A stretch of DNA of 64,000 nucleotides from Podarcis liolepis (lineage: Eukaryota): NCBI GenBank assembly GCA_965112155.1, contig OZ218105.1, one strand, 5' to 3'. The stretch's first letter is position 1, and the number at the start of each line of letters is the position of its first letter. This document shows, one piece after another, positions 6,473 through 54,254 of this stretch. Under the pieces are notes generated by a model. That model saw only the letters and a list, made by a program, of their open reading frames with translations, was not told the origin of the DNA and made no database searches. Position numbers and translations under genes: made by a program.

Positions 6473-7842
6473 GTGGGTGAATCAGGGTTTAATGGAAGGA
6501 TATCTAGTTTGGGATGTTTATTGGACCATTTTTGTTACGGTATTTTTCTGGCACTTTTAAGATCAGATTTGTTTACAGCTGTTTGATTTAGATTCTCTTG
6601 ATTTTTTTGTAACCCGCTAAAGGAGCAATCTTACGTATGCCCAGCCAGCATATTTTATGCCAGATCCATGGTGGTTTTTATCTTTTACAAGTTTATATTC
6701 CAGCAAACTTGGGGTCAAATGATGTGCTAGATTAACTAAGGGAGCGATCCTAAGTATAGGAAGGCAATGCAAAGAGTTAAGGTTGTGCCCTTAGAGACTG
6801 ATATTAAGCAGTATATATAAATCTATGAAATGCACATAAAATAACCATCCCTGATTGGTTGGGGCTGATGGGAGTTGTAGTCCAAAACATCTGGAGGATA
6901 CTGGGTTGTGAGAGGTTGGTCTACTGGAATCCAGCTGTGTTTATGGCAATTCAGTGTGACTTAAATACAGTCGCTTTGACAAAAGCAAGCCGGGAGACTT
7001 AATTACTCTGAGACTGTTGAACAGATCACAATTGAGTCAATAACATGATGAATACTCAAACATGAATGATCCACTGCTAGACCTCCCTAGCCACCCATTC
7101 TTTAATACTGAATAGATTAACGAGTAATTTGTATCATTAATTTATTTTTTGCCATCAAAGAAAGATCAAATTTGTGGGCTTGGTCATTTGTTTTACTAGC
7201 AAGCAAATTTCCCTCCCTGTATACCTTGGTCAATACTATGCAAACGGAAAGAATAAAAAAATAAACATATCTGTTGGTGCCTGGTTGTTTCTTGAGAGTC
7301 TTTCATTTATTAGCTTTCTAATCTATTTTGTGCTTCCCGTCTCAGTGGCAGCAGATGGCATTATCTTCCTAGCCTCTCTGTTGCCTTGTAAATACATTAT
7401 TGCATAGGAACATTAAAGGGCAGAAGATGACCATATGGTCTGTCATCACAGGATGCCCTTTAAAGCCCAAATACCAAATTGCCATCTTAAAACCCTAGTT
7501 CCTGATAATAGATGTATACTGCAATTTCTGCTATACATTGGGGTGCATGGAAGAAGCTAGAGGAACAGATTTCCAGCTGGTATGTTGGTGCAATTCCAGA
7601 CTCCACTGTACTTAGTGTAGTCACATTGATATGAAAGCTCTAGCCTTGATGCCTCTTACCAGTGGTGGCTTGCAAATGGAAGAAACCTTCTCGAACACTG
7701 TAGGTGTTGGCATAAATTTAGTGGAAGATTGTGGCTCTGCTAATACCGCTACACTTTTAGGAGGATATATGTCTACCAACAAACAAAGAAACCCAAGTTC
7801 TCAGCATTAGAAGAACCAGCAATTGGAAAGAAAGTCCATGGG

Positions 7843-17869: not shown

Positions 17870-18013
17870 NNNNNNNNNNNNNNNNNNNNNNNNNNNNNNN
17901 NNNNNNNNNNNNNNNNNNNNNNNNNNNNNNNNNNNNNNNNNNNNNNNNNNNNNNNNNNNNNNNNNNNNNNNNNNNNNNNNNNNNNNNNNNNNNNNNNNNN
18001 NNNNNNNNNNNNN
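17870..18013. other. Assembly gap (144 N)
   Basis: Run of N. Confidence 1.
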
Positions 18014-20899: not shown

Positions 20900-20990
20900 A
20901 TTAAAGATTTCTTGGTTTACAAAAGTATGTGCAATGTCTCCTTTTTCAAGTTACATTTTCTACAGGTCAGTTTCATTTGTTGAGACATTA

Positions 20991-21194
20991 AAGACTCTCC
21001 TCCCCGAAGGGGAGGGGAGGGGTTGTGGTCGGGGCTCGAGCTCCGGCTAGCAGGGGGCGTGGCCCCCTGCTGCCCACTCACCTGGCTGGCGCTCACGCCC
21101 CCCCGGTGGCCATCCAACCGGGGGCCACGGTGGGGGCGTGTTCAGCAGCATTTTGCTGCAGCGCCAGCCTTCGCCCGGCCTCATTCTTCCTGCC
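20991..21194 (+). repeat. Ngaro repeat A1 (truncated by the internal deletion)
   Basis: Matches 22591-22794 at offset 1600 with one difference seen (A21166 vs G22766). Confidence 0.92.
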
Positions 21195-21581
21195 CTGCTG
21201 TGTCAGTACTGGTGCGTCAGTCCAAGACCGATCAGACTGGCAAGGGTGTCCTGCCCAAGCTCACGGCGTCCGCCCAGCAGGGCCCGTGTCCGGTGAAGGA
21301 CACGAGGCGGTTTCTCCGCCTTAGACCAGCCGTCCCGGGACCGTTCCTTATACACGAGGATGGGTCGCCCCTGTTGAGGTGCCAATTCACTAGAGTAATG
21401 CGCAAGGCTATTGAGGCTTGTGGCCTACCCCCCCCATGAGTACGCTGCACATTCGTTCAGGATCGGGGCCGCCACCACGGCCGCGCATCTGGGGTTGCCG
21501 GCAGAAAGGATAAAAGAGTTGGGCCGGTGGAAATCCAATGTTTATAAGTCATATATTCGCAACCTTGCGCCTACCCCTTAG
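21195..21581 (+). pseudogene. Tyrosine recombinase, C-terminal fragment with +1 frameshift
   Basis: VLVRQSKTDQTGKG...CPV...QFTRVMRKAIEACGL. After removing one C from the C8 run at ~21428-21435 it continues HEYAAHSFRIGAATTAAHLGLPAERIKELGRWKSNVYKSYIRN*, giving the SKTDQ, HxxR, GRW and catalytic Tyr motifs of DIRS/Ngaro YRs. Confidence 0.9.
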
Positions 21582-21585
21582 TCTG

Positions 21586-21618
21586 CTTACCCTTCCTTTG
21601 TTCTATCTTTATTCCCAG
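21586..21618 (+). promoter_or_regulatory. Candidate 3' splice site upstream of the hydrolase ORF
   Basis: Branch-point-like CTTAC (21586-21590), a pyrimidine tract CCTTCCTTTGTTCTATCTTTATTCC, then CAG (21616-21618), 2 nt before ATG 21621. Confidence 0.55.
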
Positions 21619-21620
21619 CT

Positions 21621-22192
21621 ATGCCCGGAAGAAACGTGTGGATTTGCGGTCACAGCATTGTTCATTGGGCCCGCGTGCGAGCGGTTGCTGCGGCCTGGCA
21701 CCCAACCTTGGTCTGCCGCGTGATGTTCGAGTTTCCTGGTTTTCGAGAAGAGGCATGCGTTGGGAAGAACTGATGCCTTTGCTGCGGGAGAAAGTAGCCA
21801 AGCTCGGCTCTCCCGACGTCCTGGTGATTCATTTAGGGGAGAATGACCTTGTCAACAAAAGGAGTGTGGACTTGTTGTCAAGCATAAAAAGAGACTTGAA
21901 TGCATTCGCTGCCTTGTGTCCCAGAACGACAGTATTCTGGTCCTCCTTCCTGAAAAGAGCTGTGTGGCGCGGTGCGCAAAACTTGATGGCCATTGAAAGA
22001 ACCAGGAAACTCGTAAATCGGGCGGTAGCCCGTTGGGTGCGCTTTACGGATGGCCAAGTGATTTATCATGACCGTATCCGGATTAGCAACAAGGCTTTAT
22101 ACCGGGATGACGGTGTCCATCTATCGGATCTGGGGAATGATTTTGGGTTAGCTAGTGTCATTAGAAACATCTGGGATTGGTTGCAGCTTTGA
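21621..22192 (+). pseudogene. SGNH/GDSL-family hydrolase ORF of the Ngaro element (one frameshift near 21680-21690)
   Basis: ATG 21621 gives MPGRNVWICGHSIVHWA (block I nucleophile, GHS). The 21638 frame gives RRGMRW (block II Gly), VLVIHLGENDL (block III GxND) and DGVHLS (block V DxxH). Stop at 22190-22192. Confidence 0.88.
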
Positions 22193-22225
22193 GGGTATTG
22201 GCGGCGAGCCTTTAGCTCGGGTGGC

Positions 22226-22590
22226 GGTTAGGCATTGGAATAATGTGTTGCGCTGTGTGGAAGTGCTAGGTGTGGCCATCGCCTATGCCTTCAATTTTTA
22301 GGGGTATTCCGTTAAAGGAATCTGGGGGTCGTGTATTCCGTCCGATGCCTGCTTGGCGGGAGGCCTTGGCACGACCCTCGGTGACAGCAGGGGTGAGCCT
22401 ATAGTCGGATCAGCATCGACAGGCTCCACCTACTGGTGAAGAACCCAATTGTTTCGATCCAATGCCTAAGCCAATACCTTTTCAAATGCTGTAACCAATA
22501 AAGTTGTGGCCTTTCTCTAGCCCATTAACCTTATATCACGTGTCCTTGTGTCTTCATTTCACTTCACCGGGGTCGGGTCCTCGAACCACA
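22226..22590 (+). repeat. Ngaro repeat B1 (AATAAA at 22497-22502)
   Basis: 365 bp, identical by my reading to 22995-23359 (offset 769). Confidence 0.92.
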
Positions 22591-22994
22591 AAGACTCTCC
22601 TCCCCGAAGGGGAGGGGAGGGGTTGTGGTCGGGGCTCGAGCTCCGGCTAGCAGGGGGCGTGGCCCCCTGCTGCCCACTCACCTGGCTGGCGCTCACGCCC
22701 CCCCGGTGGCCATCCAACCGGGGGCCACGGTGGGGGCGTGTTCAGCAGCATTTTGCTGCAGCGCCGGCCTTCGCCCGGCCTCATTCTTCCTGCCTTCGCC
22801 CCTCACGAGTCACCCACCCTCCACTCCCTTTAGTTAGGGCTCAGGTTTTTCGGCCTTGCTATGGACCTTAGGTTGGTCGCCCTGGTTGGCTGGGGGGCCT
22901 GGTAGGAGTTTTTCCATTTGGCACTAGGCTAATTGGTTTTTTCACCTACCTCGTAGCAATCGTCACAACTTTTTTTTTGTGGTATTGGTGGGTA
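22591..22994 (+). repeat. Ngaro repeat A2 (full length)
   Basis: First 204 bp match A1. Lies between B1 and B2. Confidence 0.88.
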
Positions 22995-23359
22995 GGTTAG
23001 GCATTGGAATAATGTGTTGCGCTGTGTGGAAGTGCTAGGTGTGGCCATCGCCTATGCCTTCAATTTTTAGGGGTATTCCGTTAAAGGAATCTGGGGGTCG
23101 TGTATTCCGTCCGATGCCTGCTTGGCGGGAGGCCTTGGCACGACCCTCGGTGACAGCAGGGGTGAGCCTATAGTCGGATCAGCATCGACAGGCTCCACCT
23201 ACTGGTGAAGAACCCAATTGTTTCGATCCAATGCCTAAGCCAATACCTTTTCAAATGCTGTAACCAATAAAGTTGTGGCCTTTCTCTAGCCCATTAACCT
23301 TATATCACGTGTCCTTGTGTCTTCATTTCACTTCACCGGGGTCGGGTCCTCGAACCACA
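22995..23359 (+). repeat. Ngaro repeat B2 (AATAAA at 23266-23271)
   Basis: Direct repeat of B1. Confidence 0.92.
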
Positions 23360-26300
23360 ATGTTACATTAGGAAGAAAGGGGGGAAAGAGGTGGAGAGGT
23401 CATGGTGAGTGGGGCTGGGGTCGGGTGGCAATGTTTCTATTTTACTTAATGTATGTGTGGGTTTTACATTTTACATTTTACTTAATGTATGTTGTATCAG
23501 TGTCGCTTGTGCGGGTTCTCTTCTCTATTCGTTTGTGTTCCTTTGATGGTGAGAGAGGTTGGGGTTGGTGTAGGGTGTAGTTGTTTGTTTGTGATTGGCT
23601 GTGGTGGACTTTGCTTTCATGTGTGAGTGGGGTGGGTGGGTTTTTTTTTAATCAGGTTAGCCATATTGATTCGTATGCTGTTGGTGGATTCTTGTCGTTG
23701 TCTGATAAAAGGGAGCCATACTGGGGTGACGGTGTCTTCTTCCATATGTCCCAGTTGTCAGTTTCAGCTTATTGGTTAGTTTTTCTAGTAAGGCTGCTTC
23801 CCATACTATTTGGTACCATTGGTCTTTGCTTATTCCTGACAGGTCTCTCCAGTGTCTGGCTATGATGTTTCTGGCTGCTGAGAGTAGGTGGGTTATGAGC
23901 TCTTTGTGATGTGAGTAGGCATGATTGTCTTGGAAGATGTTTAGTAGGGCCAGTTCTGGGGTAACTTCTAATACTTGTTTAGTTATTTTGCATATTTCTC
24001 GCATGGTTGTTACCCAGACTAGTTGGATTTGGGGCATTCCCACCACATGTGGAGGTACATATTGTTAACAACTCCATCTGTCGTATTTTTCCCAGATATT
24101 GAAAAACCTATCCAGAAGTCTGGAGAAAGAGAACTACTTTCAGCCAATGCTATAAAACCTGCCACACTTCACCAAAGCCAAGGTCAGACCAGATGCTAGT
24201 GACTTTGCCCTTGAAGGGCATTGCAAACTTCACCACCTGAATGTGCTCTGCTGGGTGGCTATTCCAGTGATGACATGGAAGTAATCCTTACTAATCACCA
24301 TCCCTACCACACGATAGGCATGATTTTGTGCTCTAACCTGTGCTCAGTCCCCTTCTTTGTGATCCTTGCACCACTTGCTCTAGCCATCACCTGGCTGGGT
24401 CATTCAACTGGAATGGTCTACAGTGCTAGAGAGGTCATGCAAGAACAACCATGTCAATGCACCTTTTCACACCACTAGAGCCTCAAAAGGGGTGCCAGTC
24501 ATGCCAGTGAAAAAATAATTTAAAATGTATTTTCTCACAAAAAATGGATTCCTCCCCCCTCAAAATAAGAACATATAAATGTATTTTTTCTTAAAATAAA
24601 CATTTTCAAATGCCTTTTGAGATCCTTTCTTTCTAGCTGAGAACTGTCTCAGAACATTTGGAAAGTGTGAAAGCTGGTGGATAACTAAGTTCTGATCCAT
24701 ATGGGAAATGCAGCTGAGGTCAGTTCTTTTTGTAATTCATTATCACTGGATTCCTCAGACAGTCCGACCCAAAAGTATGCCCCATTTATTTCAACGAAAT
24801 GTATGCCCAAATATGAAAGCTTAGGGAAGAAATCCTATGAACATAAGGTAAGTCCCACTGAAAAGTACACATTGATTTACATACTTAGGCCACAACTTCC
24901 ATTCTCTGCTGGCAGGGCTTTGCAAAATGGTGACGCTGCCGTCACAACAGACTGTATGGTGGGACAGCAGAAGGCCATGGGCAGGACAATGAGGCGCATC
25001 ATCAGCACCTGATGAAAATGAGACTAGCTTGGATCCAATGTGCAGTGCTGTGGTGGAGAGGTACCACAGGGGAACACAGTTTCAACACTATTTTCAGAAG
25101 AGGTATGATGATGTCACCTGCCAGATAGTTTTTCCTTGCCCTGGCAAGTAAGTGGAGTGAAAATGAAATATTCAAGTTTGAATCAGATTAAATTAGAGTG
25201 GGAAACCTCTGCCCCACGGGCCAAATTCGGCTCAGCAGTGGTCCCAGTTGGGCCTGTGAGGCCATGTCCAGCTGGCCTACATGACCTGTCCCACACAGTT
25301 TCAATGAAAACGTTGGCAGGTGGGGGTGGGATGGAACAATACACATGTTAATCTTCAGATACCATAATGATGCCAGGTGACTGACTGGTAGGTTGTTTCA
25401 CCTACCTGTCAAAATTGACCCATAAATATGTAGCCCCCTAGACCAAGAAGGATCTGAAAAAAATGAGGAACATTCCCCCCCCCTTTTTGCAGGCGTGGCT
25501 TTGGGAGCCATCATGATAAACTCCCACACCTCAGAATTTATCACTGATTCATGGCAAGAAGGCTAAAAAGCCCTTTCAGAATTAAAATTCTCCTTTCAAA
25601 TAAGATTGTTCACATTGCGTTCAATGACATACTCACATTCCCTGATCCCAATCTCTGTAAGGAATTGGGTTTTCTTTTCTAAAGTTTAGGGGCTTGTGTA
25701 ATCTCTTGGGTACCTGGCGCTCAAGTGCATTTTACAAAATGAAAGGAGAGCTTGCGTCACTTCACATATCTGATGGAGTCACTCACAATTTAATGCAAAA
25801 CTGGCCTTGCCAATCAGACTCCCCAGGGTTTCCCAAAGTGCTTCTGAAGAGCAGTATGTTTTTGTCTTTTGCTGGAAACAGACGGGGCACTAAAGAGTAG
25901 TTATTTTTAAAAGATTCAGGTAAAAAGCTTGGCCATATAATACCCCTAATCTTTCACACTCATCCCAACTCCTCATTCCTCCTACATTTTACTATGCTGT
26001 CAATAAGCATAGTGTACTGTTCTCGCGTGACATAAAAAGATTATCTGAAAATTCCCCCCCCCCTTGTTGTAGACAACTTGTTTGCCTAGCAATATAAATT
26101 TGAGAGAACAGTGCTATTTAAATGAAATGCCAAAAGACAAAATTCCACAATATATCTTTCTTCTTTCAAAAAATGCATTTTCTTTGTAGTTCAAGAGGCT
26201 GTGTGTGTGTGTTGTTTCCTAGTGAAATATGGGGAGATTGTTACTTCTTATCCAGATGCATTTAGGTACTTACTTGTTACATACCAAAGCCTGAAAGACA

Positions 26301-45630: not shown

Positions 45631-45768
45631 CAGCCTTTCTCAACCTGTGGGTCCCCAGATGTTGTTGGACTACAATTCCCATCACCCCTAGCTAGCAAGG
45701 CCAGAGGTCAGGGATGATGGGAGTTGTAGTCCAACAACATCTGGGGGCCCACAGGTTGAGAACCGCTG
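45631..45768. mobile_element. Palindromic hAT MITE related to 35909-36044
   Basis: TIRs CAGCCTTTCTCAACCTGTGGG.CCCCAGATGTTGTTGGACTACAA / TTGTAGTCCAACAACATCTGGGG.CCCACAGGTTGAGAACCGCTG. Flanks ACCTAGGC / ACTAGGC. Confidence 0.88.
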
Positions 45769-50919: not shown

Positions 50920-51080
50920 TTCTGGCAATGGGAAGAAAAAATGTAGGAAAACAGGTCTCATGACAGGAAAAGAGGGAAATGTAAAGAGAATGCTTGACTT
51001 GAATTCTGGCAATGGGAAGAAAAAAAGTAGGAAAACAGGGCTCATGACAGGAAAAGAGGGAAATGTAAAGAGAATGCTTG
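50920..51080 (+). repeat. Tandem duplication of 77 bp (period 84)
   Basis: 50920-50996 and 51004-51080, two mismatches, 7-bp spacer. Confidence 0.9.
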
Positions 51081-51194: not shown

Positions 51195-51900
51195 TTGCAT
51201 GACCAGGCGTGACAGCCCCAGCCCCCAGAGATCATAAGAAAGGAATAAAGACTCTGACAACGTTATGGAATTAAAAATTAGGCCACAACTTTATTAAACT
51301 TCTGAATGTAGGAAGATCTTGGCTTAGGCCTTGGGCGTGTATCCTTCCAAGCCCCCCAGCTGGGGGAACTGGGGTACATCAGGGTAAATGGGATATGGGG
51401 GTGTTCTGTGAGACGTAAATGTAGCAGGCAGCCTAGCCCATATCCCTGCACGCAGAGTAGTTCACCTTTCAGTGGATGGCCAGTGACACCCCCTTTAAGA
51501 GGGGGACCCTGGAATCACCGCCGCAGGGGGTTGAATCACCACTTCACGCCCCCCCAGCCCATTAAAGGGAAGAAAAGACTAAAGGATTCCACCCAAGGCC
51601 AAAACCGCCAAAGTTGTGACAAATTGCTACAGGGAAGACAAAACCTGCCAATGCAGGAAAATTTCTTCCCGGTCCTTCAACAGCAACCAGTCAAAGACCG
51701 TAGCAGCGCCCGCTAAACAGGAAGAAAGAGTTAACCTGCAGACAAGAAAACATTAAACAAAGGGAGGGTGGGGACGGTGAATCTCCAGAGCTGACATTCT
51801 GGCTATCGTTGGCTCCACCCCCTATTTATAAATGGGGCTGTTCCCGCCTCCCAGCAAGAAACTTGATTACTGAGGCTGGGTGTGAACCTCCAAATAATAA
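51195..51900 (-). mobile_element. Solo A-B repeat unit of a second, divergent Ngaro-type family
   Basis: Minus strand carries, in the same order as A2-B2 of the 21-23 kb element: CCACCCTCC, TGCTA(C/T)GG, GTAGCAAT..GTCACAACTTT, GGC(C/A)TTGG, GCCTAAGCCAA and AATAAAGTTGTGGCCT. TATAAATA occurs in A. No YR, RT or hydrolase ORF. The A-side boundary is approximate. Confidence 0.75.
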
Positions 51901-54254
51901 CACTGAGAGGCAAGCCAGCCCCCCTTCTTCTAGTAAGTTCCCTGGGAACTGTAGCACTGTGCGCGATCCCACAAAGGGCACCCACACTATAAAGCGTGAG
52001 TGCTCATTGCCACAAGTTGTGTGTATGTACAGGGGAGATTAGCACAGGTTGACAGACTTTGCAAGCCTGGACTGTAGAGACTGGAAGCACCGATTCCCAA
52101 ATTAGAGTGGATATACTTCAGGATGAGTACCTTTATTCCCTGTGGTGGGAGGTAGATAATTCCCAACATGAGGCATCTAGGAGTGGGAGATTTAAGGGAG
52201 CCCTCAAGTTGCTTAGACTGTGGGAGTGAGGCTGTACTGTTCTTACTCAAGTCATTCAAAAAAACTCAAATGGAAACATCGTGGGATAATCAAGCGTTAC
52301 AGGCTTAATTTCTCTTATTTTGTTTTTCCTTCCTACACTATAAAACGTAATGTGTCTGTATGCAGTTTATAAGGGCCCATCGAGCTTTTTTTTTTTTTAA
52401 GCCTTCTGTTTGAAGTTTGCCTACTGTTGCTGCAAATAGAAACTTAGCATATGGTATAGTTGTAATTTGTCAAAGGAAAAAAGAAATACCTTCCATCTAT
52501 TTACCTTGTGCATATGAAACACCTTCTCTTTGCATTTTCAAGTTCTTTGCTGGGGCGTGTGTAGATTGGGCTTTCAAAAGAAACAGTAGAAACCCAGAAA
52601 AGACAGCCGCAGGGGGACATCACCAAACAATGGCACTCAGAGATGGACAAACATATCTAAGCTCCATTTGGAATTTCATCGCAAATGCAGGTGTCGTTGA
52701 AGAATCGGGGTGGAGTTTGGTGAATTTTTCAAGTTCTAAATTGGTTCACATTTCTTGGTGCGTATATACTTCTTTTACAGGCCACACAGTATCTCTTGGG
52801 AATGCCAGGCAAGAGTTTTACAGCAAGGAAGAGCTTGGAAGATATCTTCTGAAAAGTTCCAGGTATTATGAGCAGAGGAAATTCCTATATGAAGCCTGAC
52901 ATTCCAATCAATCAATCAGTTGGTTCAAACTGACCATTATTTATGAACTACAGCAGCATCACTAGAACACTATAGTGTTTATACTTGATTTTCCCTTTAC
53001 AATCCCAATTCACTTCATTGGGGACAACTGAAGTTTGATTGTGACTTGGTGACACTCCAGGAGCAGCTGAACGGAGAAACGAGACCTTTATGAAAGCTTT
53101 AAAATGGTTAAGAAAATGTAGAAAATTTGCTAATAGGAGGGGAATAGTACTTCCAGATATGATTAAAAATAAATTAGATTAATCACGTATTTCAGAATGT
53201 ATTGGCAACCTTTTATGCATATTAAATGTCAGAAGAGAGAAATTTGTTAGTAGCAGGATTCCTGAGTCAGCAACTCAAGCTGCTGATGCAGTCTCCCGGG
53301 GAGGCAGGTGTGGAATCATTTCTTTACATGACCTGATTATGAACGGAGTAGAACTTCTCTTATATATATATATATTTGGGGGGGTGTATATTTTGGTGGT
53401 AGGCACATGCTTTGCATGCCGGAGATCTATACCTCAATCCCTGCCAATTCTGGAAAATGGCAGCAGAGGATGTGAAAGACCTCTGCCAAAGAGGAGACAG
53501 TGCTACTCAAATACTGCCATTCAAATTAGACAAGGCTTGGCTCCATGGGCAAATCATCTGACCAGGTAGAAGGCAGGTTCATAACGTCCCATATCTTTTT
53601 TCCAAGGACTGGTGTTTAAAAACCTAAATTGCCTGTGAACCCTGAGCTGGACTCGGCATGAGATATGGATGCCAAGGGGGTGGAGATGGGCTGCTTTTGC
53701 TTGCCAGGCTCTTTTTTTTCCTGGCAAGAGATTGGCAAATGAAGCGGGTAGGACTGGGGTCAAATCCAGGATCTTTTCTTTCCCCTTCAAAGCAAGTAAA
53801 TAATTTTGAAGCAAGATTTAGTAAACAAAGCCTAGATTTGGGTTCTTGTAATAAAAAGAAACAAGGGCTGAAATTGCCTTAGGCCTTGAAACACAAGATA
53901 TTTTCATTATCTTTCCTCACTGAGCTGTGTTGCCATTCATTGCACACCCTTAGAAACCACCAGTAGTTCCCTTGATAGATGAGTGGCATCTTCTCCAAGT
54001 CTCTTTCTTTCTTTCTGTCTCTCTCCTTTGGTTGCCAAATTGCCTATGCTATGTTATAATTTCCATAAATGAGCAAGCAGGAGGCTTCCTTCCTTCAGAA
54101 ACACATTAGAGCCCCACAAGCGGCCCAATCAAACACTGAAATCCCTTGAAAGGGGTCAAACTGTTTGAATGAATCGCTCAAGGATGCCTAATTCCCCACC
54201 CCAACCAAAGGGCTCCCTGCCTCCTTTGCTTACGTTCTTTTTTCAAGCTTAATC

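Follow-up and report, generated by a model that had tools for sequence, protein, structure and literature searches.

Does the point at which the two parts of a Ngaro split repeat meet lie within a folded structure and, if so, in which strand and in which molecule would that structure act? The question is raised by a 64,000-nt stretch of the Podarcis liolepis genome (contig OZ218105.1 of assembly GCA_965112155.1; hereafter, the window), in which two families of elements, each built from a part A and a part B, carry a long hairpin at the head of A. To our knowledge, the replication of tyrosine-recombinase retrotransposons with split direct repeats exists as a paper model only; we know of no cis-acting signal that has been defined for Ngaro, nor of a Ngaro recombinase for which the substrate has been established.

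The family 1 element and its crossover point

Family 1 is a Ngaro retrotransposon (DIRS order) with an internal deletion, situated at 20990-23360 on the plus strand. It displays the split direct repeats that are the hallmark of Ngaro (A1 - internal part - B1 A2 B2) and reads, in order, A1, recombinase remnant, hydrolase ORF, B1, A2, and B2, with the following features:

20990-21194, plus strand: A1, 99.5% identical to A2 (22590-22794)
21197-21581, plus strand: C-terminal remnant of a tyrosine recombinase, frameshifted (ORFs, protein-library matches)
21621-22192, plus strand: SGNH/GDSL hydrolase ORF, with a frameshift near its start (ORFs, PF13472)
22226-22591, plus strand: B1, 100% identical to B2 (22995-23360)
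22567-22591, plus strand: left junction-hairpin arm, formed by the final 25 nt of B, rich in G-runs
22590-22592, plus strand: crossover AA(A), the last outer-stem pairs, adjoining the internal loop
22590-22994, plus strand: A2, from repeat comparison, with the junction hairpin followed by two more hairpins
22595-22619, plus strand: inner hairpin of 11 bp with a GAA loop, entirely within A
22623-22646, plus strand: right junction-hairpin arm, within the A head
22995-23360, plus strand: B2, 100% identical to B1, its tail (23336-23360) without a partner in the flank

A1 and A2 differ at a single base in 205, A1 having been shortened by the internal deletion that fused it to the recombinase remnant; A1 carries its own copies of the inner hairpin (20995-21019) and the right arm (21023-21046), with the left arm absent. 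Both proteins expected in a vertebrate Ngaro element, i.e., tyrosine recombinase and SGNH hydrolase, were found as remnants, and the reverse transcriptase and gag have been deleted from this copy. The recombinase remnant ends in HSFRIGAAT...GRWKSNVYKSYIR; its 56-aa C-terminal piece (21411-21578) is matched by 3866 library proteins at E<=1e-3, with full-length relatives aligning across the HxxR / GRW..Y end, and a Pfam search of the short recombinase pieces gave no match. The hydrolase ORF displays 79% identity to a Podarcis muralis protein and matches PF13472 with an E value of 1.1e-5, below Pfam's cut-off.

Comparison of the window flanks with an empty target site in another lizard (consensus ...GAGACATTAG|TGTTACATT...) revealed an insertion with no target-site duplication and at most 1-2 nt common to element and target. 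The copy is nested in another high-copy repeat (20960-20989 and 23361-23420), and its uninterrupted target is seen in many contigs of another lizard. At 22972, a sequence similar to a 5' splice site, GTAAGGTTAGGCATTGG, continues A past ...CACAAC in most other copies; the copy in the window has a T-run and extra bases there. In a low-depth contig from another lizard, a variant right arm (22628) is joined straight to the poly(A) region of B (22489); this may reflect an assembly path or a very short derivative that consists of the A head and the B end.

Because the A1 flank and B1 diverge at 20989/22589, and the B2 flank and A2 at 23361/22592, the overlap between B and A in family 1 comes to AA only (22590-22591). 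Other copies in public runs, in both lizard contigs and reads, exit the element at 22589-22592, with a loose end at 22592. The crossover position is thus well fixed at 22590-22592 by the start of A1, the end of B2, and the other copies.

Hairpins at the head of A in two families

The long bulged hairpin that the earlier note had described around the family 1 junction, with its inner GAA hairpin, was reproduced by folding. Positions 22567-22646 form 34 bp, made up of a 23-bp outer stem and the 11-bp inner hairpin; the outer stem has single-base bulges at 22581, 22585, and 22640, is followed by a 3x3 internal loop, and the hairpin contains four G.U pairs. The junction does lie inside the hairpin as claimed, with the crossover AA (22590-22591) forming the last two pairs at the inner end of the outer stem, 16 nt off the hairpin axis and without local dyad symmetry around 22590. 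The predicted RNA fold has an energy of -60.6 kcal/mol on the plus strand (z -5.2) and -46.8 on the minus strand (z -4.1), with the corresponding DNA folds at -27.9 (z -4.7) and -19.7 (z -2.5). Among 200 shuffles, none was as good as the sense RNA fold, and in a scan of 15,916 windows (mean -18, sd 7.3) the hairpin ranked in roughly the top five most stable 96-nt loci. As a Watson-Crick inverted repeat the outer arms alone are not significant (158/1000 shuffles score equally); with G.U pairs allowed they become so, and on the sense strand alone (4/1000; antisense, 141/1000). When 261 nt are folded together, the outermost ~10 bp can instead find a partner at about 22770-22782.

The B tail folds with the head of A2, and the stretch made of B2 and its flank is no more stable than its shuffled versions (z +1.9). 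Contigs from other lizards span the hairpin almost unchanged, and it is kept in high-copy relatives in several lizard species; its conservation among the listed variants is average at most. The head of A also contains two more very stable hairpins (22649-22671 and 22685-22749, with A1 copies at 21049-21071 and 21085-21149) and a GGGGGCGTG / CACGCCCCC motif, repeated in both orientations, which may represent promoter sites of the GC-box type. An Rfam search with the hairpin neighbouring the junction hairpin yielded only a nonsignificant hit to mir-3960 (E 0.7). Part of A (about 22700-22799) is missing from some subfamilies in other lizards.

Homology between the families runs in opposite orientations (E 1.6e-4), which places family 2 on the minus strand; the minus strand of the window is thus its sense strand. 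Family 2 is represented in the window by a single A-B unit, with no second copy of A or B:

51195-51857, minus strand: A-B unit, limits as in the earlier note, with AATAAA at 51295-51290
51834-51922, minus strand: contiguous hairpin of 32 bp, seven of them G.U (stable-window scan, folding)
51922-51901, minus strand: left arm of the contiguous fold
51895-51861, minus strand: inner hairpin, corresponding to the imperfect hairpin given at 51863-51900 in the earlier note
51856-51834, minus strand: right arm of the contiguous fold
51823-51830, minus strand: TATAAATA (TATA box), 4 nt downstream of the right arm

The claim that family 2 shares the layout of family 1 was borne out in part. The arms originally paired (51195-51220 and 51833-51857) lie 612 nt apart, at opposite ends of one A-B unit, and are adjacent only in a hypothetical junction. 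When this 82-nt junction was joined in silico from window sequence for folding, it gave a moderate fold (z -2.1 to -3.9) with an inconsistent strand bias. Given the search space, the corresponding inverted repeat is of marginal significance (19/1000); over 27 positions, the B tail (51220-51195) agrees with the right arm's reverse complement at 21, and this G-rich tail pairs with several alternative segments. A better, contiguous partner for the right arm, at 51901-51922, was found by the stable-window scan. The partner had thus been misassigned, and a similar hairpin at the head of A does exist: the contiguous fold reproduces the family 1 arrangement of long outer stem, spacer, and inner hairpin. 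As RNA, it reaches -45.4 kcal/mol on the sense strand (z -3.8) and -31.5 on the antisense strand (z -1.5); as DNA, the z values are -2.3 and -1.3, respectively. In the comparison with shuffled controls that the earlier note had suggested, the contiguous sense folds of both families were matched by 0 of 200 shuffles each.

A junction hairpin in both families, as had been claimed, is hence upheld for family 1, in which the crossover lies inside the structure, and not for family 2, in which we looked for a B body or hydrolase remnant upstream of the hairpin and found neither. The family 2 left arm has GGGGGCTGG in common with the B2 tail, the two being perhaps 68% alike by eye, which is not significant. 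This arm may be left over from the B1 tail of a 5'-truncated copy, belong to A, or derive from an older element; because several origins are possible, the placement of the junction inside the hairpin is limited to family 1. Beside the family 2 unit there is a tandem duplication (50920-51080, 84-nt period, 97% identical), and similar 15-17 nt stretches (GGATCGC..GCACAGTG) flank the unit on the minus strand at 51969-51955 and 51188-51172, without significance by shuffling.

Our comparison thus spans two families and one proven junction, that of family 1. The hairpin sequences themselves could not be aligned between the families with MAFFT and RNAalifold, despite having the same layout in the same place at the head of A; the bulge positions differ, with no extrahelical bases conserved in the two families compared. 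RNAduplex over long segments gave no discrimination.

Profile scans of other collections were also carried out. With the hydrolase profile, viral contigs gave no match and metagenome contigs gave four matches, on contigs of 1-1.6 kb, none of which has a junction. With the recombinase profile, viral contigs gave no match, and 17 loci were obtained from a bacterial and archaeal genome collection. These included eukaryote-type tyrosine-recombinase retrotransposons in bacterial bins, namely L006 and L008 ('Sedimenticola sp. TCF1') and L005 (Poribacteria), which presumably reflect host contamination. L006 encodes a gag-like ORF, RT/RNase H, and a recombinase, and L008 encodes a recombinase and a GDSL hydrolase ORF, as in vertebrate Ngaro elements. 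Their repeat order (R - internal part - R - spacer - R) fits an assembly-graph path, and flanks would be needed to locate the B|A point within R, for which reason neither contig was used as a test of the hairpin. Hairpins between poly(A)-like and TATA-like motifs are clearly sense-biased in L008 and only slightly so in L006; the latter contig has a sense-biased hairpin across the boundary between internal part and repeat (6565-6654). Elsewhere in the window, a nearly perfect inverted repeat of 59 nt, its arms separated by 20 nt (45631-45768; about -67 kcal/mol), looks like a short hairpin-forming repeat element, and a run of N occupies 17870-18013.

Strand polarity and position relative to the transcript

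Each left arm was aligned to the reverse complement of its right arm, with equal scoring for both kinds of transition. All 11 transition mismatches in the stems are G.U pairs on the sense strand (four in family 1 and seven in family 2), with none of the antisense type, and two transversions are present in the arm alignments. If decay were symmetric, a split of 11:0 would arise with a two-sided probability of about 0.001. The strand-asymmetric G-T pairing to which the earlier note had drawn attention is thereby confirmed, in line with a family 2 antisense fold at the level of shuffled sequence (z -1.5). The sense strand is G+T rich, and once composition is controlled for, family 1 shows little difference between its strands (z -5.2 versus -4.1). 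In other copies, T is replaced by C at 22636 in 35-65% of the depth, converting the G22576.T22636 wobble to G-C and lowering the family 1 energy from -60.6 to -63.6; because this pair is G-C in many other copies, part of the wobble asymmetry is lineage-specific. The 11:0 ratio could have arisen through selection for pairing, or through strand-biased mutation or editing of double-stranded RNA; under either origin, it points to a sense strand that is folded in life.

Given the AAUAAA at 22497-22502 in B1 and the GU-rich stretch at 22540-22555, cleavage is expected near 22512-22532, before the left arm. The B arm begins 64 nt past AAUAAA in family 1 (with 69 nt between AAUAAA and the B2-tail arm in family 2), about 35-55 nt beyond the predicted poly(A) cleavage site. 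Sparse RNA reads drop about fourfold in depth after 22527 and after its B2 counterpart, 23306, in a run of 96 reads that are mostly of <95% identity and contain no molecule starts or ends. At the other end, the A arm of family 2 (its right arm) is directly upstream of the TATAAATA TATA box. Since the B arm lies past the predicted cleavage and the A arm upstream of the TATA box, both arms would be transcribed together only at the internal B1-A2 copy. These same positions, along with the fourfold drop in reads, render it unlikely that the ends pair to circularise the RNA, as had been suggested.

Both AAUAAA and the GU-rich element are outside the junction hairpin; because of the position of the latter, masking of the poly(A) site by the hairpin would not be direct. 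Folds of B1/A2 and of B2/flank differ in the tail, with AAUAAA itself masked in neither. A small G.U-rich hairpin, GCUGUAACC-AAUAAAG-UUGUGGC, holds the AAUAAA in its loop at 22488-22510, 23257-23279, and, in family 2, 51295-51281 on the minus strand. Between the two families, conservation is highest in AATAAAGTTGTGGCC, the UUGUGG of which is identical to the start of the right arm of the junction hairpin.

Possible roles of the junction hairpin

We consider the hairpin to be probably a selected sense-strand structure, and the modelled folds suggest that it most likely acts as RNA. It would be assembled from the B tail and the A head as a cis-acting structure on the sense strand of the element's RNA. 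The transcript ends would lack both arms, the B tail being past the predicted cleavage and the A head upstream of the likely start; the full hairpin would thus form once, at the B1-A2 junction of a read-through transcript. That junction would be the Ngaro counterpart of the DIRS-1 circle-junction sequence, serving as the sole template for rebuilding the extremities. The hairpin would also constitute the only difference in cis between the internal B, with its tail paired, and the terminal B, with its tail free; in B1 the G-runs of this tail would be engaged in pairing, and in B2 they would not. The hairpin could for this reason decide the choice of poly(A) site, allowing the internal site to be bypassed in favour of the terminal one. 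A further possible role is to flag the junction template for the reverse transcriptase. To the statement as a whole, i.e., a cis-acting sense-strand RNA hairpin confined to the internal junction with a role of this kind, we assign a probability of roughly 50%; a role in poly(A)-site choice specifically is a more tentative suggestion, which we hold to be possible and on the doubtful side of even.

The poly(A) proposal draws on retroviral LTRs, where a transcript likewise contains two identical poly(A) signals of which only the last is to be used, and where local RNA structure and downstream context decide between the signals; the same is proposed by analogy for Ngaro. HIV-1, with its poly(A) hairpin and the suppression of its 5' site, is an example. 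The Ngaro hairpin differs in that it comes after both the signal and the GU-rich element, with AAUAAA outside it.

For DIRS-1, extrachromosomal cDNA is single-stranded, mostly linear, and antisense (PMC7192593), and an internal complementary region is essential for retrotransposition (PMC7192593, summarising Cappello 1985). This region, the circle-junction sequence, resembles the Ngaro junction in being an internal copy of the joined ends, in being the sole template for extremities missing from the transcript, and in adjoining the 3' repeat. In DIRS-1, however, it is complementary to the inverted-repeat ends, so that the ends of one cDNA strand can anneal to it, whereas Ngaro has direct repeats and a junction with mutually complementary halves, giving a hairpin on the sense strand.

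The principal alternative would have the junction serve as a DNA recognition site for the recombinase at the circle junction, in the form of duplex inverted arms, a cruciform, or a folded single strand of the type known from integron attC and CTX attP. The crossover AA(A) is inside the stem, at its inner end, and a recombinase must bind beside its crossover, such that the B-tail and A-head sequences must hold its site; element and target share at most 1-2 nt with no target duplication, resembling a single-point exchange. Likeness to attC and CTX attP(+) extends to the imperfect palindrome with bulged bases, a crossover in the stem, an element-encoded tyrosine recombinase, and almost no homology to the target, and the single-stranded nature of DIRS-1 extrachromosomal cDNA (PMC7192593) would provide a suitable molecule. 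The polarity is nevertheless the opposite of what such a substrate calls for. In attC, the folding strand is the single-stranded DNA strand, whereas in Ngaro the sense strand is favoured and the antisense strand, i.e., that of first-strand cDNA, gives z values of -2.5 as DNA in family 1 and of -1.3 as DNA and -1.5 as RNA in family 2, both family 2 values being at shuffled level. Because antisense is the expected polarity of the cDNA and the polarity at which the folds are weakest, the attC-like folded cDNA that the earlier note had envisaged is disfavoured, though a plus-strand single-stranded DNA form may exist in Ngaro. Moreover, the crossover occupies the distal stem end instead of the base, and neither the places of the bulges nor any extrahelical bases agree between the two families. 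As a duplex site, the junction recalls Cre/loxP and FLP/FRT, with inverted arms around a tyrosine-recombinase crossover; in those systems, however, the arms enclose a crossover region of 6-8 bp, an arrangement that family 1 lacks, its arms being 31 bp apart, differing by three indels and wobble-type mismatches, amounting to a nonsignificant Watson-Crick inverted repeat, and leaving the crossover off centre, 16 nt from the axis, with dyad symmetry absent around 22590. Since the hairpin occupies most of the space between poly(A) site and promoter, a crossover inside it would also be expected by position alone. We thus regard a recombinase recognition site as unlikely, while still deserving of consideration. 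A bolder formulation, in which the hairpin is a working substrate of Ngaro end regeneration or integration, whether through a recombinase acting on a folded plus-polarity strand (as a eukaryotic counterpart of attC) or through rebuilding and joining the ends of a direct-repeat element in the manner of the DIRS-1 internal complementary region, strikes us as improbable.

Two further readings were weighed. The palindromes could represent duplex-DNA promoter architecture, with inverted GC-box or KLF-type sites and an incidental pairing of the B tail, in keeping with three consecutive palindromes within 160 nt in family 1, the GGGGGCGTG / CACGCCCCC motif in both orientations, and a TATA box after the family 2 hairpin. 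Duplex sites would not be expected to yield an 11:0 excess of sense-strand wobbles, though, and the family 1 left arm belongs to B, past the poly(A) signal and not on the promoter side, with A1, the copy that would drive transcription, devoid of it; we accordingly give this explanation little weight. The hairpin could instead be due to chance, G-rich B tails readily finding C-rich partners, or be the by-product of fold-back priming or template switching that generated a functionless inverted duplication. Such an origin would suit the several alternative pairing segments of the family 2 B tail, the marginal inverted repeat (19/1000) first proposed for that family, the re-pairing of the outer 10 bp of family 1 in longer context, and a conservation no better than average among the listed variants. 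It fits poorly with two independent hairpins that share layout and location and were each equalled by none of 200 shuffles, with the nonrandom mismatch spectrum (11:0, with two transversions), and with the retention of the hairpin in high-copy relatives from several lizard species, and we find it hard to credit.

A hairpin at the Ngaro junction is not described in the searchable literature, a search that did not extend to the primary Ngaro papers, and its novelty is therefore provisional. Ultimately, a strand-specific hairpin that contains the crossover and would be confined to the internal junction provides a concrete element that can be mutated, thus rendering testable the questions of internal poly(A) bypass, end rebuilding, and recombinase recognition, and its strand polarity narrows the options by arguing against a folded first-strand cDNA.
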